Positions 1,181 to 40,860 of a stretch of 43,305 nt of DNA are shown here, piece by piece. Position 1 is the first letter of the stretch. Every line of letters begins with the position of its first letter. The notes beneath the pieces are model-generated. The model ran no database searches. It had not been told where the DNA came from and was given only the letters and a program-made list of their open reading frames with translations. Position numbers and translations under genes: made by a program. This stretch comes from Macrostomum lignano (taxonomy: Eukaryota), in contig NIVC01001488.1 in assembly GCA_002269645.1 (NCBI GenBank), positions 1 through 43,305 on the forward strand. Reading direction: 5' to 3'.

Positions 1181-1276
1181 AACCCGAGTTCAGTTCATAA
1201 AAGTTTATATGGATGCTTAGGCAACGTCCTTAGCATTCGAGTCCTTGTCTACCACCGACCCGAACGCCCCGCCCAG

Positions 1277-7200: not shown

Positions 7201-10200
7201 AGGGCCGCGCCCGGGAAGCCGTGGAGAAGAGCAACGAGGAGCTGAGGAAAAAGGTGAGAGGTCTGGTGGCCAAGGCTGGGACAGGTAGTGAGAACCAGTG
7301 AAGGAGACAGTGAGAGCCGGTCAGACAGGCAGTGAGAACCGGTCAGACAGGCAGTGAGAACCGGTCAGCCAGGCAGTGAGAACCGGTCAGACAGGCAGTG
7401 AGAACCGGTCAGACAGGCAGTGGGAACCGGTCAGACAGGCAGTGGGAACCGGTCAGACAGGCAGTGAGAACCGGTCAGACAGGCAGTGGGAACCGGTCAG
7501 ACAGGCAGTGAGAACCGGTCAGACCAGCCCAGTCCGCACCCCTGTCCCCGCCCAGATCAAGGAGATGGAGGCCGAGCGCATCGAGCGCGACCGGTCTATC
7601 GCCGAGCAGAAGCAGCGCATCGGCGTGCTTGAGGAGCAGAAGGCCGCCCTCGGCAAGGAGGTCGCCGACCTTCGCGGCAACCTGCGCGAGGTCGAGAAGG
7701 CCCGGGTGGAGGCCAAGCGCGAGCTGCAGGAGCTCCGTCGCCAGGTGAAGATGCTGGACACTGAGCGGGGCAAGCTGTGCAAGGAGGTCTGCGACCTGCA
7801 GTCCCGGGTGGCCCACGACGAGGAGAAGGACGAGGAGAACCGCCGGGAGAACTTCGGACTCAAGCAGAAGGTGAGCGATGAGGGACAGAGTCTGGGACTT
7901 CATAATTCTTTGATGAGTTTTATCAGCTCAAATACCCAAAGACACTTAGGACATCCAGTGATTCCGATATCCAGTTAAGCAAGATACCCAGTGACTCCCA
8001 GATACCCAGTGACTCTCAAGATACCCAGTGACTCCCAGATACCCAGTCTCGCAAGATACCCAGTGACTCCCAGATACCCAGTCTCGCAAGATATCCAGTG
8101 ACTCCCAGATACCCAGTCTCGCAAGATACCCAGTGACTCCCAGATACCCAGTCTCGCAAGATACCCAGTGACTCCCTATACCCAGTCTCGCAAGATACCC
8201 AGTGACTCCCAGATACCCAGTGACTCTCAAGATACCCAGAGACTCCCAAGTTACCCAGTGACTCTCACGATACCCAGTGACTCTCAAGATACCCAGTGAC
8301 TCCCAGATACCCAGTGACTCCCAGGTACCCAGTGACTCCCAAGATACCCAGTGACTCCCAGATACCCAGTGACTCTCAAGATACCCAGTGACTCCCAGAT
8401 ACCCAGTGACTGTCAAGATACCCAGTGACTCCCAGATACCCAGTCTCGCAAGATACCCAGTGACTCCCAGATACCCAGTCTCGCAAGATATCCAGTGACT
8501 CCCAGATACCCAGTCTCGCAAGATACCCAGTGACTCCCAGATACCCAGTCTCGCAAGATACCCAGTGACTCCCTATACCCAGTCTCGCAAGATACCCAGT
8601 GACTCCCAGATACCCAGTGACTCTCAAGATACCCAGAGACTCCCAAGTTACCCAGTGACTCTCACGATACCCAGTGACTCTCAAGATACCCAGTGACTCC
8701 CAGATACCCAGTGACTCCCAGGTACCCAGTGACTCCCAAGATACCCAGTGACTCTCAAGATACCCAGTGACTCTCACGATACCCAATGACTCCCAAGATA
8801 CCCAGTGACTCTCAAGATACCCAGTGACTCCCAAGTTACCCATTAACTCTCATTATTGATATTCATATTTTCTGTTCAAGAGACGAAACCATCTGAAAAA
8901 GAAGTTTTTTCAATCGTAATTAGAAATTTGAGCCCAGCCAGGACTCACTGGCTCCTCTTCCGTTCCTCTTAGCTTCCAAGCCAGTCACTCAGGCAGTTCA
9001 ATCAATCACTCAATCAGTCAAATTAAGGGCATTCTGAGTTTTCCAATGGACTCTTCAGGATGGGTTGGGCCTGTTATTAATAATTTATTGGCATCAGTTC
9101 TCACCGCTGACAGCTGAGCCCCAAACTTCAACAGCCATAAATTTCATTTGCTGTTTATAAAATGACAGATTGACAGATGGAAGAATGATTAGAAAGTGCT
9201 TTTTAGAAAGCAATTTATTGATTAGAAAAACTTTCGTCCAAAGATCGTCCAACTAATTAACTTGGTCATGACGGAACCTGATGACTTCTGCCTGCAGAGA
9301 TATGCTAAGTCCCATGCAGCCTTTTATAATGATCCCCAATGACCCAGTGAAGGGCTCATAGCAGTCCCCAATGACCCAGTAAAGGGCTCATAGCAGTCCC
9401 CAATGACCCAGTGAAGGGCTCATAGCAGTCCCCAATGACCCAATAACCCCGCAGGTGGTGGAGACGGAGGCCTCCCGCGAGGCGCTCCGCAAGGAGCTCG
9501 GCAACTCCAAGCGCCGCGAGGCCGACCTCGAGGAGGAGCTGCGCAGCAAGCAGCGCGACTTCGCCCTGGCCATGGAGGACGCCCGCAAGGAGCTCCGCCG
9601 TCTCGATGACGCCCGCAGCGAACTGCAGCTCAGTGTGGAGGCCGCCAGCGCCGAGAACAACGAGCTCCGCCAGGCGCTGGGCGGAGCCGAAGGCCGCATC
9701 AACGCCCTGGAGACCACTCTGGCCCGCACTGACTCGGTGAAGAAGGAGCTGGAGTACAAGCTGGCCAGCATCCACTCATCAATGCGCCGCCTCATCGGAT
9801 TCCGGCAGGACAACCCGCGCTCGCCCAGCCCCATGCGCGGCCGGTCGCCCAGCCCGGCCAGGCGCAGCCGGCCGAACAGCCCCACCAAGGGTAGGTCCGG
9901 CGAGCAGCAGCAGCCGCCTAACGCCTTGCGCAAGCCGACTTCCCTGCTTAACCTGCACCGGTCTCGGCCGGGCTCCAACGCTAACAGCCCCCAGCAGCAG
10001 CAGCAGCAGCAGCACAGATACTCAGCAGCTGGCGGGCCCGGCTATGTTAGGCGCACACTAACCAGCTCGTCTCTGAGCCTTAACGAAGCTAACGTAGCTT
10101 ACAAGGGTAAACGCTTTATTTAATAATTTAACAACAAGATTAACTGCTTAGATATCGCATTTCATCTGCTAGGGGGGCTTCTACTCTGCCATTCTCAGTT

Positions 10201-13200
10201 TCGCTGTCTCTGACCCCCCTCTCTGCTTTTCGTTCTGTCACTTTCAGTCCGAGTTCGGGCTCTGGTTGTCATGACAACCCTGCGCTACTAGTGTAGACTG
10301 AGGGGAGGGAGATGGGGCTGTTTGAACTGCTCATTGATTGAGAATGGCACACAGCTGTGAGAGCAGCGCTGGTCACGCTTAGATGAGCATCGGCCTCGCC
10401 CTCAGGCTGTGCGGCTGCCTGCCCATTGTAAACTCGCTACTGCCCTCCCCGCCTCCGCCCATCTCTTTCTCTCCGTTCTCGTGGCTGAATAAAAATGGCC
10501 TGCAACAGCACAATAGAGTTTTAGTTGCTCAAAGTTGCTCAAATTCTAGGCCAGAACTAGCTGCCTCTAACCGTCTCAACCTGCTGCAGTGAGTTCGTAA
10601 AGCTATGGTGCAATTTTTGTATTTCTAATAAATTTATTTGCATTTTATTTATTACAGCTGCGCGCATTTCACCTACTACAAGTAGTCTAACTCTAACAGG
10701 TTTTTAATAACTATAGCGGTATACACTATAATGCTTCAAGTAAAACTAATTTCACTCTTCGCAGCGGGCGGCCGCTCCGAACGGGCCGGCCAACTGTGCG
10801 ACTGCCTTGACTATGAGCTGCTGGCTCTGCCTGAGTAGCCGCAGATTATCCAGACTGATGATGAGCTTATTAATTCCAACAGTTCCAAGACGGCAGCTGC
10901 AGACAGTTCGCTAGCATGAGCATGAATGAATTCTTGCAATATAGAAACTGAAAAAATAAGTTCAATATTACTTAGTCAGTGTCAAAGCAAAGCATTCGCG
11001 CTTCGCTTACTTATAGTAGGCAATAATGTTTCATTATCATCAAGCAGCTCCCCCAAGCGGGTAGGGCAAATCGCATTCAAGGTTGCTTTTGTGTTTTTGA
11101 CGTGTCGAATGTCGAATTTATGCAGATTTATATGGTCTGGTTTTTGCATGCAGCTGGATAAATTTGATTTTCTATAAAGTACCCTTGGAACTTTGAAATA
11201 TACTTATTGTGACCCCGTCGGTTTTAGCGCAATACTTTAACTTTAACAATTTGCCGGCGTTAATACAAATGGATTGCAAAATGTTTGCCCAACCTACTAT
11301 CAGTAGCATTGATCAACTTAAATAATGCCATTGAAATTGCAACTTGGCATTGAATAGGCTTCGACGGCTCGCAGCCGTTCGCCACCACCGCCGAGGGCCG
11401 CGGCTCGCCGATCCCGCGCTCCGGCTCTCCCGCCGCCCGCGGCCGCTCGCCATTCCGCTCCGGCTCGCCGTCCCGCGGCGACATTGCCAACGCCTGCGAC
11501 ATCGATCCGGAGGCTGTCCGTCTGGCTCTGCGCGACTTCGTCCAGCAGCTCGTCAACACGGAGCGCGAGCGCGACGACGCCCTGGCCGCGGCCCGCTCGC
11601 TGGAGCAGCGCGTCGCCGAGATGGAGGAGGCCGCCCAGCGCAACGAGCAGCGAACCCAGCAGCTGCACCGGAACCTATGCGAGACCGAGGAGGACAAGAA
11701 AGGCATTGACGGCCGGCTGGCCAGCGCCCAGACCGCGCTGATGCTCCAGGAGGAGACCATCAGGCGCAACGAGCGCGAGAAGAAGGCCCTTGGCGACAAG
11801 ATGTCCGGCCTGGAGCGTCAGATCTCCGGCCTGGAGACCGAGAAGCGCCAGCTGCAGGTAAGGCGAAATTCTTTTTGTATTACAATGCCCTTTGTAACTA
11901 CTGAACAGATGACATCACAAGTAGTTCAATAAAGATTTTTGCCAAAGATATTTAATGCTTGTTTCCGACTTAATCAATGACGTCATGAGTAGTGCAATAT
12001 GTATATACTATTAAAAATCACTTCCACCTTTCAGGAGAAGTTGAACAAGATGAAGCAGCACGACGCCCGTCAAGAGGAGGACAAGAAGAACCTGAAACGT
12101 TCCCTTGACGACGTGGAGAACCGTTGCACCCAGCTGGAGCTGACCAAACGCGCGCTCGAGGGCGACCTGCAGAGAATGCGCCTCGCTTTGGGCGATAAGG
12201 ACGCCGAGAATCAGGTTGGGGAATCGCGCCGCTAATCAGATTGATCAGATTCGCCTTTGCCGGCTATGATTCGTAGTTTGAATTGAATTATCCTGTTGTT
12301 GAATTCCAGGTGCTACACGACCGCGTGGACAACCTGAACAAGCAGATTGCGGACCTCGAGTCCAAGGCGCAGTCGCTGCAGCTCACCATCGAGCGGCTCA
12401 GCGTCTCCCTGGCCAAGACTGAAGAGGACGGCAGCCAGCAGAAGGACCGCGTGCAGCAGCTCAACGGCTCCGTGTCCGACATGGCCGCCACCATCGACAG
12501 CCTGCAGGAGCGGGTCGGCCAGCTGCAGAAGGCGCTCACCAGCTCCGAGCATGATCGGCGGGTTCTGCAGGAGCGTCTTGACAACACGCACGCCGCTATG
12601 AACGAGGCCAAGCACCAGAATCACCAGCTGCTGGAGCGAGTGCAGTCTCTGCAGGTATTGCGATTGGATAATATGGCTGTCATTGACTGCCATAGGCATA
12701 GACTGACATAGAGTGCCATAGACATAGACTGACATAGAGTGCCATAGACATAGACTGACATGGAGTGCCATAGACATAGACTGACATAGAGTGCCATAGA
12801 CATAGACTGACATAGAGTGCCATAGACATAGACTGACATAGAGTGCCATAGACATAGACTGACATAGAGTGCCATAGACATAGACTGACATGGAGTGCCA
12901 TAGACATAGACTGACATGGAGTGCCATAGACATAGACTGACATGGAGTGCCATAGACATAGACTGACAGAGTACCTTAGACATAGACTGACAGAGTACCT
13001 TAGACATAGACTGACAGAGTGCCATAGACATAGACTGACATAGAGTGCCATAGACATAGACTGACATGGAGTGCCATAGACATAGACTGACATGGAGTGC
13101 CATAGACATAGACTGACATAGAGTGCCATAGACATAGACTGACATAGAGTGCCATAGACATAGACTGACATGGAGTGCCATAGACATAGACTGACATAGA

Positions 13201-16200
13201 GTGCCATAGACATAGACTGACATAGAGTGCCATAGACATAGACTGACATAGAGTGCCATAGACATAGACTGACATAGAGTGCCATAGACATAGACTGACA
13301 TGGAGTGCCATAGACATAGACTGACATGGAGTGCCATAGACATAGACTGACATGGAGTGCCATAGACATAGACTGACAGAGTACCTTAGACATAGACTGA
13401 CAGAGTACCTTAGACATAGACTGACAGAGTGCCATAGACATAGACTGACATAGAGTGCCATAGACATAGACTGACATGGAGTGCCATAGACATAGACTGA
13501 CATAGAGTGCCATAGACATAGACTGACATGGAGTGCCATAGACATAGACTGACAGAGTACCTTAGACATAGACTGACAGAGTACCTTAGACATAGACTGA
13601 CAGAGTGCCATAGACATAGACTGACATAGAGTGCCATAGACATAGACTGACATGGAGTGCCATAGACATAGACTGACATAGAGTGCCATAGACATAGACT
13701 GACATGGAGTGCCATAGACATATACTGACAGAGTACCTTAGACATAGACTGACAGAGTACCTTAGACATAGACTGACATGGAGTGCCATAGACATAGACT
13801 GACATGGAGTGCCATAGACATAGACTGACATGGAGTGCCATAGACATAGACTGACATGGAGTGCCATAGACATAGACTGACATGGAGTGCCATAGACATA
13901 GACTGACATGGAGTGCCATAGACATAGACTGACATGGAGTGCCATAGACATAGACTGACATAAACTACCATAGACATAGACTGACATGGAGTGCCATAGA
14001 CATAGACTGACATAGAGTGCCATAGACATAGACTGACATAGAGTGCCATAGACATAGACTGACATGGAGTGCCATAGACATAGACTGACAGAGTGCCATA
14101 GACATAGACTGACATAGAGTGCCATGGACGGACTGACAGAGTGCCATAGACATAGACTGACATAGAGTGCCATAGACGGACTGACAGAGTGTCATAGACA
14201 TAGACTGACATGGAGTGCCATAGACATAGACTGACATGGAGTGCCATAGACATAGACTGACATGGAGTGCCATAGACATAGACTGACAGAGTGCCATAGA
14301 CATAGACTGACAGAGTGCCATAGACATAGAGTGACAGAGTGCCATAGACATAGACTGACAGAGTGCCATAGACATAGACTGACAGAGTGCCATAGACATA
14401 GACTGACAGAGTGCCATAGACATAGACTGACATGGCGTGCCATAGACATAGACTGACATAGAGTGCCATAGACATAGACTGACATAGAGTGCCAAATACA
14501 TAGACTGACATAGAGTGCCATAGACATAGACTGACATAGAGTGCCATAGACATAGACTGACAGAGTGCCATAGACATAGACTGACATAGAGTGCCATAGA
14601 CATAGACTGACATAGAGTGCCATAGACATAGACTGACAGAGTGCCATAGACGTAGACTGACATAGAGTGCCATTTAGAATGCCATAGGGAATATCATTTT
14701 TATTTCTCATTGTACAATCGAACAAAAATACACTGTCAGGGTGAGCTCACCGACAACGAGCACCGGCGCAACGATCTGGAGGGCTCAAATCGGCAGACGA
14801 ACTCTCTGCTGGCCCAGAAGCAGGAGGCTGAGCAGGAGCTCACGCAGAAGCTCAACAAGGCCAATCAAGAGCGCGCCGCCATGCAGGAGCGGGTGCAGAG
14901 CCTTCAGCGCGCCCTGGCCGGCTTGGAGAATGAAAAGAAGGAGATTGAGAAGTCGGCCAGCCGATTGGAGAAGGACAAGACCGCGCTGAAGAAGACGCTC
15001 GACAAGGTTTGTTATTTTAGGCTTTTCAATATTTCTATCGATACATATCGCTAAAAGCTTCGTGTCGAAATCAACAAAAATATTTTTAGTATGAATTTCC
15101 ATAGAGTAATTAATGATTACAATGTTCCTTTATTCTACCTACTGTATGACGCAATAAGTAGTGTAGTATAATTTATATGAATTTTATATTCGATTATTCA
15201 TTCTGCTTTGAAAAGCCCCACCACTGCGGCCAAGTCGAGTCCCGCTCGCTTGTGCACTGTCGCCACTGCGGCGGCCTCGTCCTGCTGGTGCGCCAGTACT
15301 GCCCCGAGCACGGCCCGTTCGTGGAAACCCCCGCCGATTTCTGCGACGATCTGTCGCTAATAGATAGTAGGTGCCGGGAAAGGCGGACCAGATTATTAAT
15401 TTGGTTTTAACTCACGGTTATTCAGCATAGTAATGAATATTCTTTTATTTCCAAAATTGTTATAATTTTCGGATTTTACAATTTTTTTTACACTTAAAAA
15501 GAGCTCAAAATGCTACTGACCACTCACGAGTTCCTGTCAAAGATTTTTATGTTTTTTTTCTTTTTCGGTCACGTGTTTTTTATACTTGCAAGTTTTTTAT
15601 CTACCGATGTTATTTGGCTTGTCTAGGAACTGCTCCCAAAAGGTTTTATAATATTGCCCAACAACCCCTTCAGAGGATCGAACCTTTTAGATAATCGCCC
15701 TAAACTACCCGAGATAATCGCCATAAAATTCCAGAAATAATCGCCATAAACTACCTGAGATAATCGCCATAAACTACCCGAGATAATCGCCCTAAACTAC
15801 CTGAGATAATCGCCATAAACAAAAACTACCAGAAATAATCGCCATAATCTACCCGAGATAATCGCCATAAACTACCTGAGATAATCGCCATAAACTACCC
15901 GAGATAATCGCCCTAAACTACCCGAGATAATCGCCATAAACTACCCGAGATAATCGCCATAAACTATCCGAGATAATCGCCATAAACTACCCGAGATAAT
16001 CGCCATAAACTACCCGAGATAATCGCCATAAAATACCAGAAATAATCGCCATAAACTACCCGAGATAATCGCCATAAACTACCCGAGATAATCGCCATAA
16101 ACTACCCGAGATAATCGCCATAAAATACCAGAAATAATCGCCATAAACTACCCGAGGTAATCGCCCCAAGCTATATTTAAACGGTCATGAAAAGCCAATG

Positions 16201-17103
16201 AGGCCATAAAGTGCAGCCGCGCTTCACCGCCCCGCCAGGTGGAGCGGGAGCGCATCCGCACGGAGGAGGCGGCCTCCAAGTCGGCTTTCGCTCGCGGCGA
16301 GCTCGACTCCGCTTTGCGTCGGTTGGAGGAGGAGAACGAAGCCCTCCAGCGCCAGGTGCAGGCCCTGCAGAGTCACCTTGCCGAGGCGGAGCAGGCCCAC
16401 TCGCAGCGCCTGATGGACCTAGGCGCCAAGCATCGCGAAGAGACCGACACGGAGCTGGAGCGGCTGAAGGCTGGCCAGCTGGCTGCGGAGCGAACTCTGG
16501 AGAACCGGGAGCGCCTGCACAGACAGCGGGTCAAGGGACTGGAAGAGCAGGTGAGTCTCAGAGAATTTTATGTTGAGTAAAATTTCATGTTTAACTACAA
16601 AAAATAGAATCTTTACAGTTCCGCATCATACTACTAAATAATTTTTAAGTAGAAAAATAAGGACATAAAACGTAAAAAAATATTGAATCCATTTATAAGT
16701 GACGCAATTAGCACAAAAAATAATGATTTTTTCTCGCTCGCAGGTTGCCACGCTGAAAGACCAGCTGGCGCAGGAGGTGCGCCGTAGGAACCAGTTCCTG
16801 TCCAAGTCGGCCCGCGGCGCCGCCGGCGACCTGTCCGACATTCGTACCATCCTGGACTCGTCGCTCGGCACCGTCAGCCGCGACCCCGGCCTGGACGCCG
16901 CCCTGTTCGACGCCGAGTCCCGCCGGCTCGACGAGGCCCTCGACTTGCACAACGCCTTCCCCGGCGGCGCCGGAAAGCGCGCCGGCTCGCCTTCGCGCCT
17001 CGGCGGCGCCGGCGGAGCGCTGCGCTCGTCCACCCCGTCGGGCCGGCCGGCCGGCATGCGGCTGAGCCGCGGCCCCAGCCTGAAGTCCTCGCTTAAAAAG
17101 TGA
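1277..17103 (+). CDS. CROCC: Rootletin (ciliary rootlet coiled-coil protein), 5'-incomplete, 15 exons: 1277-1924, 2403-2659, 3463-3690, 4221-5225, 5371-5540, 6124-6375, 6837-7253, 7556-7870, 9455-9890, 11358-11857, 12035-12214, 12310-12654, 14740-15006, 16239-16550, 16744-17103 (about 1,900 codons in window)
   Basis: Rootletin-domain motif SASLAHVNAML-RQLDQA...E-SF-EYFSSEHNRLL-LWR, plus the motifs VQAALNKRALQVQELR and DIDPEAVRLALRDFVQQL, within a long heptad coiled coil. All introns are GT-AG and phases match once one base is restored in each of three exons (near 1601, 2523, 4637). Stop TGA at 17101-17103. The 5371 acceptor has an in-frame alternative at 5341. Confidence 0.93.
2030..2365 (+). 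repeat. ~35 bp minisatellite GGGTGAGATTATTTGAGATCAATATCAAATCTCAT
   Basis: About 9 tandem units, each containing internal inverted repeats. Confidence 0.9.
2719..3340 (+). repeat. 21-24 bp minisatellite TTGGCGCCCCCATGATTTTCCCA
   Basis: About 27 tandem units; source of the spurious repetitive minus-strand ORFs. Confidence 0.95.
3900..4170 (+). repeat. Degenerate purine-rich repeat (GAGAGAAGTAGATAAG-like)
   Basis: Recurring GAGAGAAGTAGATA motifs within a rootletin intron. Confidence 0.7.
5597..6030 (+). repeat. ~31-37 bp minisatellite GACTCTGAGAGCGTCACGTGACTCTTTTCTTCTCGAT
   Basis: Tandem units, each with the palindrome GTCACGTGAC, interrupted by a MITE-like insert. Confidence 0.9.
5672..5788. 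mobile_element. MITE-like ~116 bp element with imperfect ~27 bp terminal inverted repeats
   Basis: Left end GGGGTCGTACTATAAAGCTGTCGTAG versus reverse complement of the right end GGGGCCCGTTCTATAAAGCCATCGTAAG; interrupts a minisatellite. No clear TSD. Confidence 0.55.
6454..6690 (-). mobile_element. Truncated copy of the same SINE family in a rootletin intron
   Basis: Reverse complement shares ATTAATTTGGGGCT..ATTGGAATCTCGGCTTGG, AAATAAAGTTAGGG..CTGTACACTCCTGTGTGAGTG and TGCCTGCTCAGGGGAGTC with 40315-40676. Confidence 0.8.
7305..7524 (+). repeat. 22 bp minisatellite GTGAGAACCGGTCAGACAGGCA
   Basis: About 10 tandem units. Confidence 0.95.
7950..8852 (+). repeat. 18-20 bp minisatellite GATACCCAGTGACTCCCA/GATACCCAGTCTCGCAA
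   Basis: About 45 units with a 397 bp higher-order duplication. Confidence 0.95.
9334..9442 (+). repeat. 32 bp repeat CCCCAATGACCCAGTGAAGGGCTCATAGCAGT
   Basis: About 3.4 tandem units directly before the exon acceptor. Confidence 0.9.
12685..14672 (+). repeat. 26/24 bp minisatellite GACATAGACTGACATAGAGTGCCATA
   Basis: About 77 tandem units filling a 2.1 kb intron. Confidence 0.97.
15688..16168 (+). repeat. 23 bp minisatellite GATAATCGCCATAAACTACCCGA
   Basis: About 20 tandem units. Confidence 0.95.
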
Positions 17104-23973: not shown

Positions 23974-25907
<1,934 letters not shown>

Positions 25908-26357: not shown

Positions 26358-29300
26358 TCACAGCTTGGAGTCTGCATCAATTTTCAATTCAACATCGTCG
26401 GCTCGCACAGTCGGCCTGCTGCCGCTACTCAAAACTGCAGGTCCTTGCAGGTGCCCAGCAGAGCCGGTGGCTGCCTGACGACACTCGCGCATTCGAGCTC
26501 CCACAGCCAGCGCAAAGTAGAGCAGAAGCTCAAACAGTTCGCAGGCAGTCAGAATAGAAATTCCGGACCAGAGACCAAGGGCTCCTAAAGTAAAATTGAA
26601 GGTTTACTTGCAAAAAGTATCGATAACTTCTTGGTTTTTATGCAGATAAAATTAACTTGAAAAGAATTGCGACAGCACGTAAAACCTCTTTGGACTCGAC
26701 ATTGCTTTGAATGGTCCGGCTAGGGATAGCTCTCACTGGCTTGAATCGCTGAACCAGCCTCCCTCACGCTCACACGGGATTAACAGCGGCCTTGACTCTC
26801 AGGCATGTCAGGCATGTACACTTCCGGGATCCTTGGGGGTCGGCCTTCGTGGATGTGAATCGTACGAAACCTTTGGGCCAGTTTTTCAAGTACAAGCGAA
26901 TCGAACGTTTAGTTACTAGGAAACAATTTCGTTAGCAAACTTGTTATCTAACCTCCAATGTCAGCCAGAAGGTTCTTGGTGGGATAAGCCTCTTCCTCTG
27001 AGACCTCCTGTCCGTACGATGTCCAGGCCTGAACTGTTAGCTGGGCAAGTCTGTTTTGAAGTGCCGTCAGCTCGCTGTCGAAGCTGAGAATGTCCAGCGG
27101 GTTCCTCATACTGGCTGGCGATTGAGTGAAGTTCAGCGATCTCAAATAGGCGCAGTAGACGCTGTTGATTCCCCTGAGGCCACTCGGACTGCTGCCGTAT
27201 CCGAGGGCAAAGGCGAGGTTCTTCAAAAACGCCAGCGACCGGAAGCTGTTCAGATTCGGCCACGGATACGTAATGTGCCGGGCGCTGAAATCAGTTGTGT
27301 AGCACGCAGCCTTGCAGAGGCTGACGGCATCGAACTGGTACTGCACCAGATTCGCGACTTGATTCCTGAAGCATAAGTCGGTTTCCGTGGAAATATTTGG
27401 CATAGTTTGGGTGTCGAAGCAGTAAGCATGTCTTGCAAAGAAATCGGCTCGGACAGGCAAAAACGAGGGCAAGCAGCGGCATTTATCGATGAACTTCTCG
27501 ACAACGTAGGTGTTGATGCAGTCCTCCATGTCAGTGTAGCTGAATACTTTGTCTACTCCAGTTAAAGTTCTAAAAATCAATAAATATTTGGAACTTAAAA
27601 AATTTGTCCTTTGTGAAGCCTTTTTTCTTAAACAAACCTGGAGCTGTTCAGAGTTTCCAGCATCATTTGAAAGTGTGCGAGCTTTTGTTTCCAATCGGCG
27701 GCAGAGACTACCGCCTCAAGATCCGTACTCATGCTGAAGTGTTATTACAAAATTAATGGTATTCTTAAAACAGTGCTTGCTACCATGGCAGGTAGAGCAC
27801 TTTCGCACTTACTCCAATTCCTTGTTCGAATCGGCCTGCTTCCACGACGGTAGCCGGTACACAATTGGCTCGGGAACCTCCGAGCAGGGTCTCCGAGCGG
27901 TGGAGAGTTTGGAGAATTTATCGAGTCTCAGCTGCACATCCATGCGTTGAGCAGCGGCTACGTCGATGCCCTTCGATGGCCAGGGGAAGCTGCTCTCCGG
28001 AACGATTATCGCCTGTAAGATGAAGACAATGATAGGGAGACGGCTTGGTGGACTTAAAAAGAGAAGAAAATCTTGCATGGTTCATAATTTCTCGTCGTCT
28101 ACTCCGTTTTCTGAGGTCCCAGAGCGAAGCAAGGATTTATTATTGATGATCCGTGCTTTTCGTGGGCGACAGCACCAGTAGTGGCGCCAGTACCATTGGC
28201 GCCAAAGGCAAACTAGTTGTTAAGGTAATGCTAAAATTAGGAACAGAGGGTGCCCAACCCATTGTGAGGGGCACTAAAGCTGTCTTGAAGGAGGCGCCAG
28301 TCAGCTGGAAAAGGGCACCATAATTTCTGTTACTTACTGGGGATGGGGGCCGCGGTGCCATTGCCCTCCCCCTGGCTGCGCCCCTCTGTGGTCTCCCAGC
28401 TCCTATTGGACCATCAGTTTCCAGTTTCCTGAAAAGTTGGTCCCTGAAAAGTTTAGGCGAAAATTCTTCCCTTGAATGCAATTCGGCTGGCATCGGAATC
28501 CACGCTGCCGTGCACGACTCCAGCCAGTTGATCCATGTTGGCTACCATCTGTCCCTTCGAGTCGGTTGCGTCAGTAAAGTACTTGATTGACAGCTGACTC
28601 TGGGCCTGTTGCCTGCTGGTCATGCTGGCAGTGAAACGCTGCTTGAGAAACTGATGGCACATGCCCAGCTGGGGGTGGGCAATGTTCAAAAAGTCATCCT
28701 TTGTGCATTTCTGACCAGCGAAGCTGCAGTTCGCAAGGCTGATACTGAGGTCGCTGCCGAACTGGCGTGCCAGCAGGTGGCTCCCGACCGAGTCCCTGAT
28801 GGCCCCTGTCACAGTCGGTACTGCTGAATCTATGGGCGCAGAGTTTAATTGCGGTTAATTTTATTGTTGTTGAGACTGCATTACGCTCTTATTCTTCGAC
28901 TATAGCTACAACATTTGGCATAATTACAGCAGTATGCAATGTCGCATGGCTCAAGCTCAACGTTCGCGAACGCAACGGCAGCTCCAGTGTTCACGGCGCA
29001 CACAGGTGTGTCAGAAAAAGCAATCGGATACCGACTGAAGCAACCACGTGAGGGGCGGTACGTATGACTTGAGGCAAATGCATTTACCTAATCAATGTTC
29101 AAAGAAAAGTACGCATATTATACCGTTTTACTCTGGATTCAACGCTATCTTCCGCTATGATTTCAACTGATCGACAAAAATTTTCGCCACCTTGTTCACT
29201 GTAGTCGGGCGTTCGAATGTCAAAGCCGAGAAAATTGTATGGTCCTGAAAGAAAAATCAAAAAAGATTTTATCAGTGCCTTCAGACAGAATTCAAAATGA

Positions 29301-32300
29301 CTTGTTCGGTTCAAACAAACCGAAAAAGAAGCGCCTCGACATGCTTTCTTCAAGCGAGCTCCATGGCAAGCACGGCTTTACGGTAGAGGAAACATTTTTT
29401 CGACCAGTATACTTTGCTCGCTGCTGCTTTTGAACGACCTCTTCATCGGAGCTTACTATGCAATCAAAGGCGCTGGCAGTAGCTGAAATGCAATAAAGAG
29501 CGCCACTATCGATTTTAAGAGCTAAAGCTAAAACTTTGCCTAATTCGAAAACTTACGGCAAAACGGAATGTCACAGAAGGCTGCATTCAGTTTATCAAGC
29601 TCATCCAAAAAGAAACAATACGGCCCGTTAGATAAGACTGTCAGATTGCTGAAGTTTCCGATTTGCAAAGGCTTCGGTTCTGTAAGCGGAATGATTCGTC
29701 AATTTCGCGGCTTTCTTAGCCACTTATTCAGTTTGTTTGCACTTGTATCTGTTTACTTGTTTTCTCTCCCTCTGTCTTGTTCAGGTCTTGTCTCTTCTCT
29801 CTCTCTCCCTTGACGCCTTCTGATTGGCTCTTCAGTCTCGCCTCTTTCCTCAGTCGCGCATTCCACCCCCTCCTTTTCTTATCTGCACCCAACCTCTCCC
29901 TCTAATTTATTGCCTTGTTATTATACCCGTTTAAGCCCTGCGCCACACTTACTTTCTGTTTTCAACTCTAATTAAATAAATAGTTTATTTATTCCGACTC
30001 AATTGTGACTAATATCCCTGAAAATATGGAATTAGCTTGTAGAATGATGCTTAAAAATAAAGATTTTGCGACTTTTAACCAAACAACCCACCCGTGTCCG
30101 CAATCTGTATCACGGTTACGGCAGTCGGCGATCCGCAGGCCTGCTTCCGGTTGCTGATGCAGCTGCTGTTGCAGATGCTGCTGTTGCTACTGCTGTTGCC
30201 CGAGCCGGGAAAGCCGTTGCCACAGAGGCAGCTGCCGGGCTGCAGCCCGATGTGCGAGTATCCAAGGAGACCGCAGCAGTCGGCGCAGGCCTCGTGGCTG
30301 ACCAGCCCGCCGGTGCCGCAAGTAAAGTTGAACTCAAAGCCGGTCGAGTTTGCAGCATAGCATCCAAGCAGTTTCAGTAGTGGACCTGGGATTCAAGGCG
30401 TGGATTGAAAGTTAACCAACTTATGTAGATGTTTTGTTGGAACGCTTGGCACTTACGGTTCGCTATGGTTAAAAACTCCGTCAGAGGTAGGCCAGGGGGA
30501 GAGCGGCACCTTGACTCGCTGTTTGAGTAGTTAAGCGCGAGCAGCTTGTCAGCAAGTGCTTCAGCACTTCTTCGTTTCAATTTCCGAGCAGCATCGTTCC
30601 AATTCATGCACCGCACTTGGGACCTGAGTGGCGGAAGTTTAATTGCAGTGATGTTCTCTGACTCCAGCGCTATATTTGAGCGCTGATAGATGATAGCTGA
30701 GCTCTTAGATCCAACTTAATCCTCTCCTGAGAACGTTGTTCGACATTCAGCCGTGTCTGAAAATTTGAATTTCTTATGCATCAGCTTTGCCAAAGTATAG
30801 TAGTACATGCAAATCCTATATACTAAAAATGAAAATCTTGCTTGCTTGCTTGTAATCGATTAGAGAAAAAATGGCTGGACCGATTTTCATGAGACTTGCA
30901 CTGTTCGATCAGAAATTTTCCTGGGACGGTACATGCATCTTGGCTAAGAAATTGCTCCATGTTAAAGCGATTAAATATTCGAAAAACATGCTTTTTTGCA
31001 AAGGTCAAGCAAACTTTTCGACTTGAAATGCATTGTAAGAATGCTAGAGAAAAAACTGACTGGTTGAATTCTGATTCTGAAATGGATTACATCATAACTG
31101 AATTGTAACTCCGAATTGAATTGCGTCACAGTATTGAAAATGCAGTGTGGAAGCGTAGCACCAGACTTGATTTAGATTGCGCAACCATATTGTTAACTGA
31201 TACTGACTGACTGAGAAATTGATTATGTAATAACTGCCTCGTGTGATTTACTCTATGCTTGGAGTTTTGAAACTTATAATTATAAGTGCTGAATTCATGT
31301 TATCAAAACGATGAGAGCTAGCCTAGAGGTAAACAGACTGAACTGCTAAATGCAGAAACGATGGTTCGAATTTTTAGAGAGTAGAGTTTTTTAATTAAAG
31401 CTTTTTAACGCCAAGAAAACTAAAAAAATCATAAAAGCGTCATGTAAAAAATCATAGAAGCGTCATGTAAAAAATCGTGGAAGTGTCATGTAAAAAATCG
31501 TGGAAGCATCATGTAAAAAGCATAGAAGTGTCATGTAAAAAATCATAGAAGCGTCATGTAAACAATCATAGAAGCGTCATGTAAACAATCATAGAAGCGT
31601 CATGTAAAAAATCATAGAGGCGTCATGTAAACAATCATAGAAGCGTCATGTAAAAAATCATAGAAGCGTCATGTAAACAATCATGGAAGCGTCATGTAAA
31701 CAATCATAGAAGCGTAATGTAAAAATCATAGTAGCGTCATGTAAAAAATCATAGAAGCGTCATATAAACAATCATAGAAGCGTCATATAAAAAATCATAG
31801 AAGCGTCATGTAAAAATCATAGAAGCGTCATGTAAAAATCATAGAGGTGTCATGCAAAAATCATTGAAGCGTCCTGCAGAAATCGTAGAAGCGTCATGAA
31901 ATAATTATAGAAGCGTCATGTAAAAAATCATACAAGCGTCATGTAAAAAATCATAGAAGCGTCATGTAAAAAATCATAGAAGCATCGTGTAAACAATCAT
32001 AGAAGCGTCATGTAAAAAATCATAGAAGCGTCATGTAAAAATCATAGAAGCGTCATATAAACAATCATAGAAGCGTCATGTAAACAATCATAGAAGCGTC
32101 ATGTAAAAATCATAGAAGCGTCATGTAAACAATCATAGAAGCGTCATGTAAACAATCATAGAAGCGTCATGTAACAAATCATAGAAGCGTCATGTAAAAA
32201 ATCATAGAAGCGTCATGTAAAAAATCATAGAAGCGTCATCTAAAACATCATAAAAGCGTCATGTAAAAAATCGTAGAAGCGTCATTTAAAAAATCATAGA

Positions 32301-35300
32301 AGCGTCATATAAACAATCATAGAAGCGTCATGTAAACAATCATAGAAGCGTCATGTAAAAAATCATAGAAGCGTCATGTAAACAATCATAGAAGCGTCAT
32401 GTTAAAATCATAGAAGCGTCATGCAAACAATCATAGAAGCGTCATGTAAACAATCATGGAGGCGTCATGTAAACAATCATAGAAGCGTCATGTAAAAAAT
32501 CATAGAAGCGTCATGTAAAAATCATAGAAGCGTCATGTAAACAATCATAGAAGCGTCATGTAAACAATCATAGAAGCGTCATGTAAAAAATCATAGAAGC
32601 GTCATGTAAAAATCATAGAAGCGTCATGAAAAAAATTATAGAAGCGTCATTTAAAAACTAATGAAAGTGTCATTTAAAAAATTAAGAAGCATCATAGTAG
32701 AATAAAAGAAGCGTCATGTCAGACATGAAAGGTGTCATGGAAAAATTAAATGCAGCTATAATGCTGTGCTGGGGAGAATTACTGAGACGTCAAGGCTCTC
32801 AGAGAATAACTGAGATTACGGGGGGGGTTTCTGAGATGTCAAAGCAAAAGTCAGAAGCTAATTCAAAGTTCATGTACTTTACTCAATTTTTTTATTGCAT
32901 TCTTTGTTGGCTCGCCACGGGAGGCGCTGATAGAAGAAGAGTCATGTAAAAAATAAAAGTAGCACTAAGTATACATAAAAGAAGAGTCATGTCGAAGTTA
33001 AAAGATTCATTTGGGAATTGCTACGATGTCAAAGCTAGGTGGAAATCGTTATAGTGCTGTGATTCTTAAAGAAGGAATCACTAAAATGTCAAGGCTTAGG
33101 GGAGAAGAATTGCTGAGATTTCAAGGCTTTAGGTTGGGTTAAAGTTAGGTTTAGGTCAGGTGTGGGTTGAGGGTTATATTTTATCGAGTTTCAAGGTTAG
33201 CAGGGGATTTTTCAGATTTCAAGGTTTATGGGTGCCATCGCTGACATGTTAAGGCTTACGGGGGGAATAGCTGAGATGTCAAGGCTCACGGGGTATAAAT
33301 GAGATTTCAAGGCTAAAGTCAGAAGCTACATGTAGTTTATTGAAAACTTTTTATTACATTATTTGATGCCTCCTCAGGGGAGGGATCGCTGATTAAAAAA
33401 GCGTAATGTAAAAAATAAAAGAAGCTTCATGTCGAAGTTAAGATATTCATTTGGGAATCCCTACGATGTCGAGGCTTGCAGGGAATCGCTATAATGCTGT
33501 AGTAGTGCTATAATGACTCTTAGAGAGACTTACTGAAATTTCAATGCTTTAGGGTTAGGTTAGGGTTAGGGTTAGGGTTGGGGTTAGGCTAGGGTTAGGG
33601 TTAGAAGGTTGACAGATATTTTTAGATTTCCAAGGCTTATTGGGGGCATGGCTGAGATGTCAAGGGGGGAAGTTGATATGTTAAAGCTTGTGGGGGGAAT
33701 TACTGACATGTCAAGGCTTACAAGGTTTGATAGGAGATTTTTTAAGATTTCAAGGATACATGTAGCTTATTAAAAAAACGTGAATTGCATTTCTTTGGCT
33801 CCCCAACGGGGGGCGTAGATTGCTAGTAAGTGCTAAAATTCATATTATCAAAACGATGAGAGCTAGCCTAGAGGTAAACAGACTGACTGCTAAATGCAGG
33901 GACGATGGTTCGAATTTTTAGAGAGTGGAATTTTTTTAAGTAAAGCTTTTTAACACCAAGAAGAAAACTAAAAAATCATAGAAGCGTCATGTAAAAAATC
34001 ATAGAAGCGTCATGTAAAAAATCATGGAAGCGTCATGAAAAAAAATCATAGAAGCGTCATGTAAAAAATCATGGAAGCGTCATGTAAACAATCATAGAAG
34101 CGTCATGTAAAAATCATAGAAGCGTCATGTAAAAAATCATAGAAGCATCGTGTAAACAATCATAGAAGCGTCATGTAAAAAATCATAGAAGCGTCATGTA
34201 AAAAATCATAGAAGCGTCATCTAAAACATCATAAAAGCGTCATGTAAAAAATCGTAGAAGCGTCATTTAAAAAATCATAGAAGCGTCATATAAACAATCA
34301 TAGAAGCGTCATGTAAAAAATCATAGAAGCGTCATGTAAACAATCATAGAAGCGTCATGAAAATATCATAGAAGCGTCATGTAAAAAATCATAGAAGCGT
34401 CATGTAAACAATCATAGAAGCGTCATGTAAACAATCATAGAAGCGTCATGCAAAAAATCATAGAAGTGTCATGTAAAAAATCATGGAAGCGTCATGTAAA
34501 AATCATAGAAGCGTCATGAAAAAATCATGGAAGCGTCATGTAAAAAATCATGGAAGCGTCATGTAAAAAGCATAGAAGCGTCATGTAAAAAATCATAGAA
34601 GCGTCATGTAAAAAGCATAGAAGCGTCATGTAAAAAGTCATGGAAGCGTCATGTAAAAATCATAGTAGCGTCATGTAAAAATCATAGAAGCGTCATGTAA
34701 AAAGCATAGAAGCGTCATGTAAAAAATCATAGAAGCGTCCTGCAGAAATCGTAGAAGCGTCATGAAAAAATCATAGAAGCGTCATGTAAAAAACATAGAA
34801 GCGTCATGTAAAAAATCATGGAAGCGTCATGTATAAATCATAGAAGCGTCATGAAAAAATCATGGAAGCGTCATGTAAAAAATCATGGAAGCGTCATGTA
34901 AAAAGCATAGAAGCGTCATGTAAAAAATCATAGAAGCGTCATGTAAAAAGCATAGAAGCGTCATGTAAAAAGTCATGGAAGCGTCATGTAAAAATCATAG
35001 TAGCGTCATGTAAAAATCATAGAAGCGTCATGTAAAAAGCATAGAAGCGTCATGTAAAAAATCATAGAAGCGTCCTGCAGAAATCGTAGAAGCGTCATGA
35101 AAAAATCATAGAAGCGTCATGTAAAAAACATAGAAGCGTCATGTAAAAAATCATGGAAGCGTCATGTATAAATCATAGAAGCGTCATGTAAAAATCATAG
35201 AATCGTCATATAAAAATCATAGAAGCGTCATGTAAAAATCATAGAAGCGTCATGTAAACAATCACAGAAGCGTCATGAAATAATCATAGAAGCGTCATGT

Positions 35301-37044
35301 AAAAAGCATAGAAGCGTCATGTAAAAAGCATAGAAGCGTCATGTAAACAATCATAGAAGCGTCATGAAAAAATCATAGAAGCCTCATTTAAAAACTAATG
35401 AAAGCGTCATTTAAAAAATTAAGAAGCATCATGGAAGAATAAAAGAAGTGTAATGTAAAAATCAAAAGAAGCGTCATGTCAGACGTGAAGGATGTCATGT
35501 AAAAATGAAATGCAGCTATAATGCTGTGCTGGGAAGAAAAACTGAGACGTAAAGGCTCTCAGAGAATAACTGAGATTACGAGGGGGGGGTTGTTTCTGGG
35601 ATCTCAAAGCAAAAGTCAGAAGCTACTTCAAAGTTCATGTACTTTACTCAATTTTTTATTGCATTCTTTGTTGGCTCGCCATGGGGGGGGTGCTGATAGA
35701 AGAAGAGTCATGTAAAAAATAAAAGTAGCACTATGTATACATAAAAGACAAGTCATGTCGAAGTTAAAAGATTCATTTGGGAATTGCTACGCGCGATGTC
35801 AAAGCTTGGTGGAAATCGTTATAGTGCTGTGATTCTTAAAGGAATCACTAAAATGTCAAGGCTTAGGGGAGAAGAATTGCTGAGATTTCAAGGCTTTAGG
35901 TTGGGTTAAAGTTAGGTTTAGGTCAGGTGTGGGTTGAGGGTTATATTTTATCGGGTTTCAAGGTTAACAGTGGATTTTTTAGATTTCAAGGTTTATGGGG
36001 GCCATCGCTGACATGTCAAGGCTTACGGACGGGGGGGAATAGCTGAGATGTCAAGGCTCACGGGGGTATAAATGAGATTTCAAGGCTAAAGTCAGAAGCT
36101 ACATGTAGTTTATTGAAAACTTTTTATTACATTATTTGATGCCTCCTCAGGCGAGGGATCGCTGATAAAAAAAGCGTTATGTAAAAAATAAAAGAAGCTT
36201 ATCGCTATAATGCTGTAGTAGTGCTATAATGACTCTTAGAGAGAATTACTGAAATTTCAATGCTTTAGGGTTAGGTTAGGGTTAGGGTTAGGGTTAGAAG
36301 GTTGACAGATATTTTTAGATTTCCAAGGCTTATTGGGGGCATTGCTGAGATGTCAAGGGGGAAGTTGATATGTTAAAGCTGGGGGGGGGAATTACTGACA
36401 TGTCAAGGCTTACAAGGTTTGACAGGAGATTTTTTAAGATTTCAAGGATACATGTAGCTTATTAAAAAAACGTGTATAGCATATCTTTGGCTCCCCAACG
36501 GGGGGCGTAGATTGCTAGTACTGTCTGAAAATTTACCCGAAAACTGAAGTTTGCTCATTATTGCGGCTTCTGTGCTGTGGAGCACCTTCCCCAATGCAAC
36601 AGCGGGTTTGCTGGGATCCACATACCTCCCAGATAGGAGCTCAAAGTTGTACAGAGCGATTTTCGTGCCAATTCCTAGATTGGGAAAGTTCTCAAGCGCG
36701 TAAATTTGGTAAGACGGCAGCTGCTGGACTGCCATGCTCATCGTTACTGTGCTTGTTGGACAGATTTACACATCCGGGAACTGGAACGACAGTGTAGAAA
36801 ACTTCATCGTCGTGAGCACGGGAGCCTGGATAAATCTTTCGAACAAAGTGGACAGGTGGTAGGCAAATCCGCCGTAAGTGCTCAATAGAAATCCGACCCA
36901 GATGCACTTGCCAATAAGGCTGGACTGCTCAGAGAATCGACCCAAACCGTGAGCAGTTGTGTAGCTGCAGAAGTTTTTCACGAAGACGCCCAGCTGACCG
37001 GCTATTGGAGCTGGCCTGTCAGGAGATTTTGAGCAGCTGCTCAT
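26358..37044 (-). CDS. DEG/ENaC (amiloride-sensitive channel) family gene. Exons: 37044-36626, ~30726-30457 (5' edge unresolved), 30385-30092 (WSC), 28829-28471, 28012-27813, 27733-27638, 27569-26953, 26584-26358. Contains apparent lesions
   Basis: Pre-TM1 F-SYTTAHG motif, TM1, FPDV-IC, LANCSFAGQKC...GMCHQF, FPWPSKGIDV...RPC, Cys-rich thumb (CINTYVVEKFIDKCRCLP...CKAAC) and TM2 LLADIGGALGLWSGISILTACELFE with a G-x-S filter. Phases match across the last seven exons. There is an in-frame TAA at 36768-36766 and a GG in place of the GT donor at 28470-28469. Confidence 0.88.
26720..26930 (-). mobile_element. Diverged relative of the same SINE family in the last DEG/ENaC intron
   Basis: Reverse complement contains GTTCGATTC, CCCCAAGG, AAGTGTACATGCCT and GGCCGCTGT...GTGTGAG in the same order as the 40315 element. 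Confidence 0.55.
30092..30385 (-). CDS. WSC-domain exon of the DEG/ENaC gene (symmetric phase 1-1, 98 codons)
   Basis: Translation PLLKLLGCYAANSTGFEFNFTCGTGGLVSHEACADCCGLLGYSHIGLQPGSCLCGNGFPGSGNSSSNSSICNSSCISNRKQACGSPTAVTVIQIADT has the 8-Cys WSC pattern. Acceptor cccag at 30390-30386, donor gtgggt from 30091; in frame with both neighbouring exons. Confidence 0.85.
31425..32720 (+). repeat. 22-23 bp satellite array (AGAAGCGTCATGTAAAAAATCAT), copy 1
   Basis: Direct tandem repeats, roughly 55 units. Confidence 0.95.
33549..33604 (+). repeat. Interstitial telomere-like (TTAGGG)n tract
   Basis: TTAGGG TTAGG TTAGGG TTAGGG TTAGGG TTGGGG TTAGG CTAGGG TTAGGG TTAG. Confidence 0.85.
33965..35480 (+). 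repeat. 22-23 bp satellite array (AGAAGCGTCATGTAAAAAATCAT), copy 2
   Basis: Direct tandem repeats, roughly 65 units, with an internal ~335 bp higher-order duplication. Confidence 0.95.
36265..36297 (+). repeat. Interstitial telomere-like (TTAGGG)n tract, copy 2
   Basis: About 5 TTAGGG units at the position homologous to the copy-1 tract. Confidence 0.85.
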
Positions 37045-40690: not shown

Positions 40691-40860
40691 GAGTCCAAGG
40701 ACTGGGGGGTCGCCACACAAACCCTTAATTACCCCAGCTAATGCTGGCACCCATTTTACAGCTGGTGAACTGAAGCAATGCAGAGTTAAGCGTCTTGCTC
40801 AAGGACTCAAACTGTTCCGAGTGAGCCGAGAATCGAACCCCCGACCGTTCAGTGGACCAA
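40691..40860 (+). mobile_element. CORE-like SINE segment immediately downstream of the tRNA-SINE insertion
   Basis: CACCCATTTTACAGCTGGTGAACTGAAGCAATG...GTCTTGCTCAAGGACTCAAAC...GAGAATCGAACCC resembles the CORE-SINE central domain; related pieces occur at about 19650-19690 and 20330-20412. Confidence 0.5.

Follow-up and report, generated by a model that had tools for sequence, protein, structure and literature searches.

A WSC domain exon nested within a kringle in the predicted finger of a Macrostomum lignano DEG/ENaC family, and a probably inactivated gene copy

Introduction

Channels of the DEG/ENaC superfamily respond to protons, peptides and force. Lineage-specific regulation resides in the finger of their ectodomain, which in ASICs and ENaC passes regulatory input to the gate. 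Elaborations of the finger known elsewhere are the GRIP domain of ENaC subunits and the extra regulatory and Cys-rich extracellular regions of nematode degenerins. Matrix coupling of the mechanosensitive DEG/ENaCs is still debated. WSC modules elsewhere function in carbohydrate binding or cell-wall stress sensing, and kringles in protein binding. Here, we analyse a stretch of 43,305 nucleotides from the flatworm Macrostomum lignano (contig NIVC01001488.1 of assembly GCA_002269645.1, positions 1 to 43,305 of the forward strand), referred to below as the window, in which a minus-strand exon encodes a WSC domain. Our reading, to which we assign a probability of roughly 0.8, is that (i) this exon belongs to a 12-exon DEG/ENaC gene, (ii) the finger of the encoded channel carries a kringle that is split by the WSC domain and followed by a second kringle (written kringle[WSC]-kringle), (iii) the family with this architecture is so far found in M. 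lignano only, and (iv) the copy in the window is inactivated.

Results

An exon encoding a WSC domain

The exon that carries the WSC domain is the third of the gene:

30092..30385, minus strand: exon 3, WSC-domain exon, phase 1-1, with the domain at about 30368-30132.

The exon (30385-30092) is 294 nucleotides long, has AG directly before it (30387-30386) and GT directly after it (30091-30090), and gives, when read with two leading bases and one trailing base as expected for phase 1-1, a stop-free translation that opens with PLLKLLGCY...ACGSPTAVTVIQIADT and has IADT at its C-terminal end. The frame contains no ATG, GTG or TTG start and is therefore missing from the list of open reading frames (ORFs) of the window. 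The Pfam WSC profile PF01822 (gathering cut-off 27.8 bits) matches the exon alone with 35.9 bits (E 8.9e-9) and the spliced protein with 29.2 bits, and no Pfam match is found in the other frames or on the opposite strand of the exon. All eight canonical Cys residues are present (C8, C33, C37, C52, C54, C71, C75 and C83), and the corresponding columns do not vary in an alignment of 50 WSC domains, i.e. the one in the window and 49 others. An AlphaFold2 model of the exon has a mean confidence (pLDDT) of 83.7, with the caveat that the alignment behind the model consists of WSC domains themselves. In Foldseek comparisons this model superimposes on the sensor domain of yeast Wsc1 (7PZ2) with a template modelling score of 0.83-0.84 and a root-mean-square deviation of 1.5 A, on the WSC domain of glyoxal oxidase with a score of 0.80 and on that of Kremen1 with a score of 0.73-0.76. 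The exon at 30385-30092 is confirmed to encode a WSC domain.

The domain also contains an extra pair of Cys residues, C22 (30320-30318) and C36 (30278-30276), in the motifs FN.TC and C.CC, respectively. This pair is kept across the Macrostomum family and absent in the other aligned WSC domains, and the two residues may form a fifth disulfide.

The host gene

A gene model built with homologous proteins as a guide places this exon in a minus-strand gene of 12 exons that extends from an ATG at 37044 to a TGA at 26358 and has a product of 1,037 codons. All junctions save one donor have AG/GT ends and compatible phases, and the product is collinear end to end with the full-length paralogues P0168, P0154, P0011 and P0162. 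The remaining exons are as follows, with a slash marking the exon-intron boundary:

36537..37044, minus strand: exon 1, with the ATG, the HG motif (TTAHGLGRF), transmembrane segment 1 (TM1), FPDV*ICP and the initial finger helices; phase-1 donor G/GTAAAT; Pfam ASC N-terminal part 39 bits; aligns with all paralogues.
30457..30756, minus strand: exon 2, phase 1-1; N-terminal half of kringle 1 with C1 (ECRTT), GE[ED]Y.G, C2 (RCMNW) and C3 (ESRCRSPPG); donor C/GTAAGT.
29557..29679, minus strand: exon 4, phase 1-1; C-terminal half of kringle 1, GPYCFF...AAFCDIPFC (C4, C5, C6).
29321..29482, minus strand: exon 5, phase 1-1; start of kringle 2 (FDC...YTGRKN...KPCLPW).
29124..29244, minus strand: exon 6, phase 1-2; middle of kringle 2 (IRTPD...ENFCRS).
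28928..29034, minus strand: exon 7, phase 2-1; end of kringle 2 (PVC...EPCDIAYC).
28471..28829, minus strand: exon 8, starts in phase 1; the ASC ectodomain resumes (SVGSHLLARQF, CSFAGQKC, GMCHQF).
27813..28012, minus strand: exon 9, phase 0-2; AIIVPESSFPW...
27638..27733, minus strand: exon 10, 96 nucleotides, symmetric phase 2-2; MSTDLEAVVSAADWKQKLAHF...
26953..27569, minus strand: exon 11, palm, thumb and knuckle of the ASC ectodomain; Pfam ASC 36 bits.
26358..26584, minus strand: exon 12, TM2 (GALGLWSGISILT) and the C-terminus; stop codon TGA at 26360-26358.

The Pfam ASC profile PF00858 (cut-off 23.6 bits) matches the spliced model with 137.3 bits in two stretches, an N-terminal one at model positions 1-70 and a C-terminal one at 148-455, and the closest relatives of the channel in the PDB are FaNaC, ENaC, ASIC and PPK26. 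Hallmarks of the superfamily include the HG motif TTAHGLGRF before TM1 and a TM2 (GALGLWSGISILTACELFELL) that aligns with those of FaNaC and ASIC. The ASC profile is broken at positions ~113 to ~147, which is the site of the insert; from the known ASIC and ENaC structures we take these positions to be the finger, upstream of the CxFxGxxC strand, and the placement of the insert in the finger is therefore correct. Judged by its sequence, the host gene is a DEG/ENaC, i.e. a predicted two-transmembrane channel, with an insert in the finger.

These results bear out the core of the original prediction, which had been made from the letters of the window without database searches. The 294-nucleotide minus-strand exon outside the ORF track, with its AG/GT ends and its 1-1 phases, is confirmed in every respect; its WSC identity holds (PF01822 match over the cut-off, 8/8 Cys, WSC fold in the AlphaFold2 model), as do the DEG/ENaC host (ASC 137 bits on the spliced model, with FaNaC, ENaC and ASIC as relatives in the PDB) and the finger location of the insert, at ~113 to ~147 of the ASC profile. 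The exon was also rightly called a symmetric 1-1 module, and the positions of its introns are kept even in a 33%-identical paralogue.

Two observations concern other exons. Exon 10 is included in the models P0003, P0008, P0154, P0011 and P0162 and not in P0004 and P0005; it may be a cassette exon, or its uneven presence may be gene-model noise. A counterpart of exon 4 is found in P0007, P0008, P0010, P0011, P0012, P0015, P0168 and P0170. The first intron of the gene (5.8 kb) contains two 23-bp minisatellite arrays at 31423-32719 and 33969-35479, with 57 and 67 copies, respectively; their apparently similar flanks suggest a segmental duplication inside the intron.

The finger insert is a kringle[WSC]-kringle cassette

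The insert comprises ~376 residues, extends from the first finger helices to the last helix before the CxFxGxxC strand, and is bounded on both sides by phase-1 introns. It consists of a first kringle split by the WSC domain and a second kringle, and the lone WSC module originally proposed gives way to this cassette. The WSC domain sits in the C3-C4 loop of kringle 1, exons 2 and 4 encoding the two kringle halves, and kringle 2 (exons 5-7) has long loops. Both modules, in the window copy as in every full-length paralogue, have the six-Cys order typical of kringles (Y.G, C..W, CR.P.G, P[WY]C, C.[IV]P.C), and in kringle 1 this framework is collinear only if the WSC exon is taken out.

When a profile of kringle 1 with the WSC domain excised was compared with the PDB, all 51 of 51 matches were kringles (best E 5.6e-5), and the alignments to tissue plasminogen activator (tPA) and plasminogen extend over the point of excision, covering C2 to C6. 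With the kringle-2 profile, 53 of the 54 listed chains were kringles (best E 2.4e-3). In hhalign comparisons with 15 canonical kringles, kringle 1 aligned over its full length with a probability of 97.7% (E 1.7e-12), the alignment continuing over the excision junction, and kringle 2 with one of 97.2% (E 4.7e-11); the maximum for the controls, 20 column-shuffled profiles and one reversed profile, was 8.6%. At the level of sequence these comparisons show that both modules are divergent kringles and that kringle 1 nests the WSC domain.

Both kringles have an intron ~17-18 residues past the third Cys, in phase 1 in kringle 1 (after 30457) and in phase 2 in kringle 2 (after 29124), and the WSC exon is placed exactly within the former. 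This arrangement fits insertion of a 1-1 WSC exon into a pre-existing kringle intron, and the phase-1 bounds of the cassette together with the 1-1 phases of the WSC exon fit stepwise exon insertion.

A family found in M. lignano

A profile of the cassette was searched against 1.84 billion representative proteins and gave 254 matches at E<=0.001. In the best 150 of the 254 matches and in the further proteins retrieved, ASC parts occur alongside the cassette in M. lignano proteins only; the remainder are ordinary proteins with WSC repeats or kringles. No donor gene in which a kringle nests a WSC domain was found among the profile matches, the rest of which are ordinary multi-WSC proteins; a mussel protein among the matches has five WSC domains and a linear kringle. 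The cassette channels of M. lignano form at least six paralogue groups with 32-58% mutual identity among the full-length members compared. Members include:

A0A1I8IV52 (P0008)
BOX15_Mlig006056g1 (P0168)
PAA86857.1, BOX15_Mlig006398g1 (P0154)
PAA82974.1, BOX15_Mlig007204g1 (P0011)
PAA47210.1 (P0162)

In UniProt and NCBI these proteins are named "WSC domain-containing protein", "Amiloride-sensitive sodium channel" or "hypothetical protein", and a family fragment, P0163, is named kringle domain-containing protein in UniProt; all entries are automatic annotations without a described function. The family members share with the window copy the succession of ASC N-terminal part, kringle-1 N-terminal half, WSC domain, kringle-1 C-terminal half, kringle 2 and ASC remainder, an identical Cys framework, and the positions and phases of the introns near the WSC exon. 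The window copy is nearest to P0008 (57.8%) and P0168 (53.2%), and no annotated protein in the searched collections matches it, the closest being 53-58% identical. It differs from all the members listed above and would be a further paralogue. The locus of P0168 has zf-U1 and RPL22e genes as neighbours and the window has actin-like and rootletin-like genes, so that the two loci do not share synteny. In the paralogue locus L001, which is 33% identical, the WSC domain is again encoded by one phase 1-1 exon with flanking introns at the same positions; the exon and domain structure therefore predates the diversification of the family.

In the group formed by P0154, P0010 and P0169, the WSC segment lacks several canonical Cys residues, the kringle halves being intact, and Pfam WSC is undetected in P0010 and P0169. 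Given this loss of Cys residues, the WSC fold may be dispensable in some paralogues, i.e. it may not be essential in every member of the family.

No paper that we found places a WSC or kringle domain inside a DEG/ENaC channel (ENaC, ASIC or degenerin), in line with the original prediction, and a FaNaC paper in which three M. lignano DEG/ENaCs were tested does not mention such domains. The architecture, a DEG/ENaC whose finger carries a modular, nested insert, has not been described in any paper that we found, but a multi-paralogue M. lignano family with it is already present in public databases.

Three lesions in the window copy

The window copy differs from the other M. lignano cassette channels in having, as the only one among them, two Tyr codons changed to TAA and a GG donor:

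36766..36768, minus strand: in-frame TAA at codon 93, at the invariant Tyr of FPDVYICP; TAC in the paralogue loci L001 and L002.
30716..30718, minus strand: in-frame TAA at codon 183, at the invariant Tyr of the kringle motif that reads GEEY.G in paralogues; L001 and L002 have TAC.
28469..28470, minus strand: lost donor after exon 8, AAG/ggaaga, with GG in place of the phase-0 GT of the family; L002 has GCATTCAAG/gtgagt and L001 has CAG/gtaaca.

A possible cryptic in-phase donor, AGC/GTGGAT, is present after 28504, 33 nucleotides upstream of the lost donor; the stops are not bypassable. A functional DEG/ENaC gene is expected to have an uninterrupted frame and intact splice sites, and the window copy has neither. 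With two TAA codons and a GG donor, this copy cannot make a channel as assembled, and most likely it is a very recently inactivated pseudogene. The working channel that had been predicted from this locus is probably not made.

Both internal stops are TAA and both are at an invariant Tyr. Under random nonsense mutation of the coding sequence, the chance of this is ~0.003-0.008; the coincidence was noticed post hoc and is a pattern without an explanation.

Other features of the window

The window is eukaryotic in character, with spliced genes and minisatellite-rich introns. Two further genes were recognised:

23974-25612, minus strand: divergent actin-like gene, ends in TGA.
~1200-17000, plus strand: large coiled-coil gene, rootletin-like in appearance.

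The first intron of the actin-like gene is filled by an 18-bp minisatellite (24991-25440). In the same gene, one base is missing from a C-run at RVAP/EEHP, near 24807-24811, and the frame is shifted, reflecting either a homopolymer error of the assembly or a second damaged gene. The best database match of the rootletin-like gene is an Elysia chlorotica protein with 58% identity, and no M. lignano protein for this gene was retrieved in the database search; its introns are packed with minisatellites, e.g. at 12677-14673 (79 copies of a 26-bp unit) and at 7979-8842. The sole nucleotide match between the window and 35 kb of L001 is a segment of 63 bp with 95% identity (40727-40789 in the window, 9472-9533 in L001); it matches neither a tRNA nor an Rfam family and may be a short conserved repeat. 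The tRNA and Rfam scans of the window found nothing.

Discussion

The reading set out here rests on profile matches, exon phases and the comparison with paralogues, and several points weigh against parts of it. As regards inactivation, no frameshift is found in the 3.1 kb of coding sequence; only 7 of 169 otherwise invariant columns deviate in the window copy, i.e. the two stops and five conservative changes, which is no worse than in the intact paralogue P0168; apart from the three lesions the coding sequence looks selected; and the nearby actin-like gene has a 1-nucleotide homopolymer deletion, so that assembly errors are possible. As regards the cassette, single sequences do not reach the gathering score of the Pfam kringle profile PF00051 (34.3 bits) and score ~13-19 bits. 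The matches are below threshold both for kringle 1 with the WSC domain excised (2/7 sequences, best E 1.4e-4) and for kringle 2 (8/9 sequences, best E 2.4e-4), and we therefore refer to these modules as divergent kringles. Moreover, an AlphaFold2 model of the whole cassette of P0011, based on a 9-row alignment, has a mean pLDDT of 52.5, which is too low for use of the fold. As regards function, the suggestion that the cassette acts as a tether or ligand sensor is something that we only infer from the roles of WSC and kringle modules elsewhere.

The most serious alternative is a functional gene, in which both TAA codons and the GG donor would be mistakes of sequencing or assembly, or else variants carried by one haplotype. 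In this scenario, the conservation of the remaining coding sequence, which is free of frameshifts and like that of intact paralogues, would be accounted for, the indel in the actin-like neighbour would be of the kind typical of long-read assembly errors, and the cryptic donor after 28504 could bypass the donor loss at the cost of 11 residues of a variable loop. However, all three lesions are base substitutions and none is an indel. Moreover, nonsense paths constitute ~4% of the single-base changes in the coding sequence (362 of ~9300), and three random disabling errors would imply an error rate at which many other changes would have occurred, of which none are visible; also, the searched collections hold no protein for the locus. 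Given that the three lesions are all disabling substitutions, errors or allelic variants are the less likely explanation, and we consider a functional gene at this locus unlikely.

A second alternative concerns the way in which the WSC exon is spliced. In the original prediction, a lone WSC exon is joined directly to the exon that ends at 30457 on one side and to the one that begins at 28829 on the other, perhaps in an alternative isoform. The first part of this proposal is sound in that the exon end at 30457 and the phase-1 start at 28829 are compatible in frame with the WSC exon (1-1, then phase 1), and the automatic models P0001 and P0002 do lack the exon for the C-terminal half of kringle 1. 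By contrast, four exons with canonical sites and compatible phases (29679-29557, 29482-29321, 29244-29124 and 29034-28928) intervene before 28829; these exons are present in P0008, P0011, P0154, P0162 and P0168, and P0001 and P0002 are without the kringle-1 C-terminal half only. Direct splicing would also leave half a kringle with unpaired Cys residues, and the junction is present in no database protein. As the main form, splicing of the WSC exon to 28829 is ruled out by the four intervening exons in homologues, and we regard direct splicing in any form as very improbable; the WSC-plus and WSC-minus isoforms that had been envisaged are not supported. A WSC-minus form joining 30457 to 29679 would bring the two halves of kringle 1 back together.

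Alternatively, the TAA codons could be decoded, as Tyr or by read-through, such that a full-length channel is made. The identity and the position of the two stops, both TAA and both at an invariant Tyr (~0.003-0.008 by chance), would be explained in this way, and so would the apparent constraint on the coding sequence otherwise. We know of no nuclear reassignment of TAA in flatworms, however, and the other Tyr codons of the gene are ordinary (10 TAT and 22 TAC). Likewise, no TAA interrupts the actin-like gene, whose stop codon is TGA, the M. lignano paralogues read TAC at both sites in agreement with the standard code, a suppressor-like tRNA was not found in the window by the tRNA scan, and the donor mutation is a third, unrelated lesion. 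We regard decoding of TAA as very improbable as well. Finally, that the WSC-like frame is a chance ORF or belongs to a separate nested gene with no relation to the channel, for which only its absence from the list of ATG-started ORFs speaks, is barely credible, given that the Pfam score is over the threshold, that the WSC fold is recovered, and that paralogous channel genes have this exon at the same place and in the same phases, with their annotated proteins including it.

Returning to a kringle[WSC]-kringle cassette in the finger of a DEG/ENaC family, we suggest a working scheme for the intact members. These proteins would be trimeric Na+ channels, and each finger would display one WSC domain of the glycan-binding type and two kringles of the protein-binding type. 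Considering the binding roles of WSC and kringle modules and the role of the finger in gating, the cassette would most plausibly be a receptor or a tether that is built into the channel and couples binding of matrix, glycan or ligand to gating via the finger. In its full form, in which the cassette acts as an extracellular receptor and gates or anchors its channel, intact members are opened or tuned by matrix, glycan or protein, and modules are nested at three levels (WSC in kringle in ASC finger), this proposal is tentative and, in our estimate, has a better chance of being wrong than right. If it is true, these channels would be gated through the finger by a receptor of their own, a mode that is not described for the DEG/ENaC superfamily.

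If placed as we read them, the WSC domain and two kringles in the finger constitute a natural experiment on tethered or ligand-coupled gating, and M. lignano is a flatworm laboratory model, so the family is open to testing. The phase-1 exons and the WSC domain within a kringle also provide a clean example of stepwise module insertion. The interest of these findings rests on the architecture of the family and less on the locus in the window, since the copy found there is probably dead and public databases already contain the architecture.

Among known systems, the Wnt co-receptors Kremen1 and Kremen2 (kringle-WSC-CUB) resemble the cassette in that kringle and WSC modules adjoin in one ectodomain, and PDB chains of Kremen1 are matched by both the WSC and the kringle profiles of the family. 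In Kremen, however, the domains are arranged linearly (kringle, WSC, CUB), whereas in Macrostomum the WSC domain lies inside kringle 1 and is followed by kringle 2; the window protein has no CUB match; and Kremen is a single-pass receptor as opposed to a two-transmembrane ion channel. Yeast Wsc1 (7PZ2) ranks first among the structural matches of the WSC exon and among the PDB matches of the cassette profile (E 8e-6), but the identity is 25-26%, Wsc1 is a single-pass fungal sensor, and the C22/C36 pair is extra in the window. With the GRIP domain of ENaC subunits and the insertions in degenerins, the cassette shares that it is large, lineage-specific and located in the finger, which varies more than the rest of the ectodomain and is its main regulatory part. 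Those insertions consist of family-specific sequence, whereas the Macrostomum insert is composed of mobile modules, WSC and kringle, that also occur in unrelated extracellular proteins and are encoded on phase-compatible exons.

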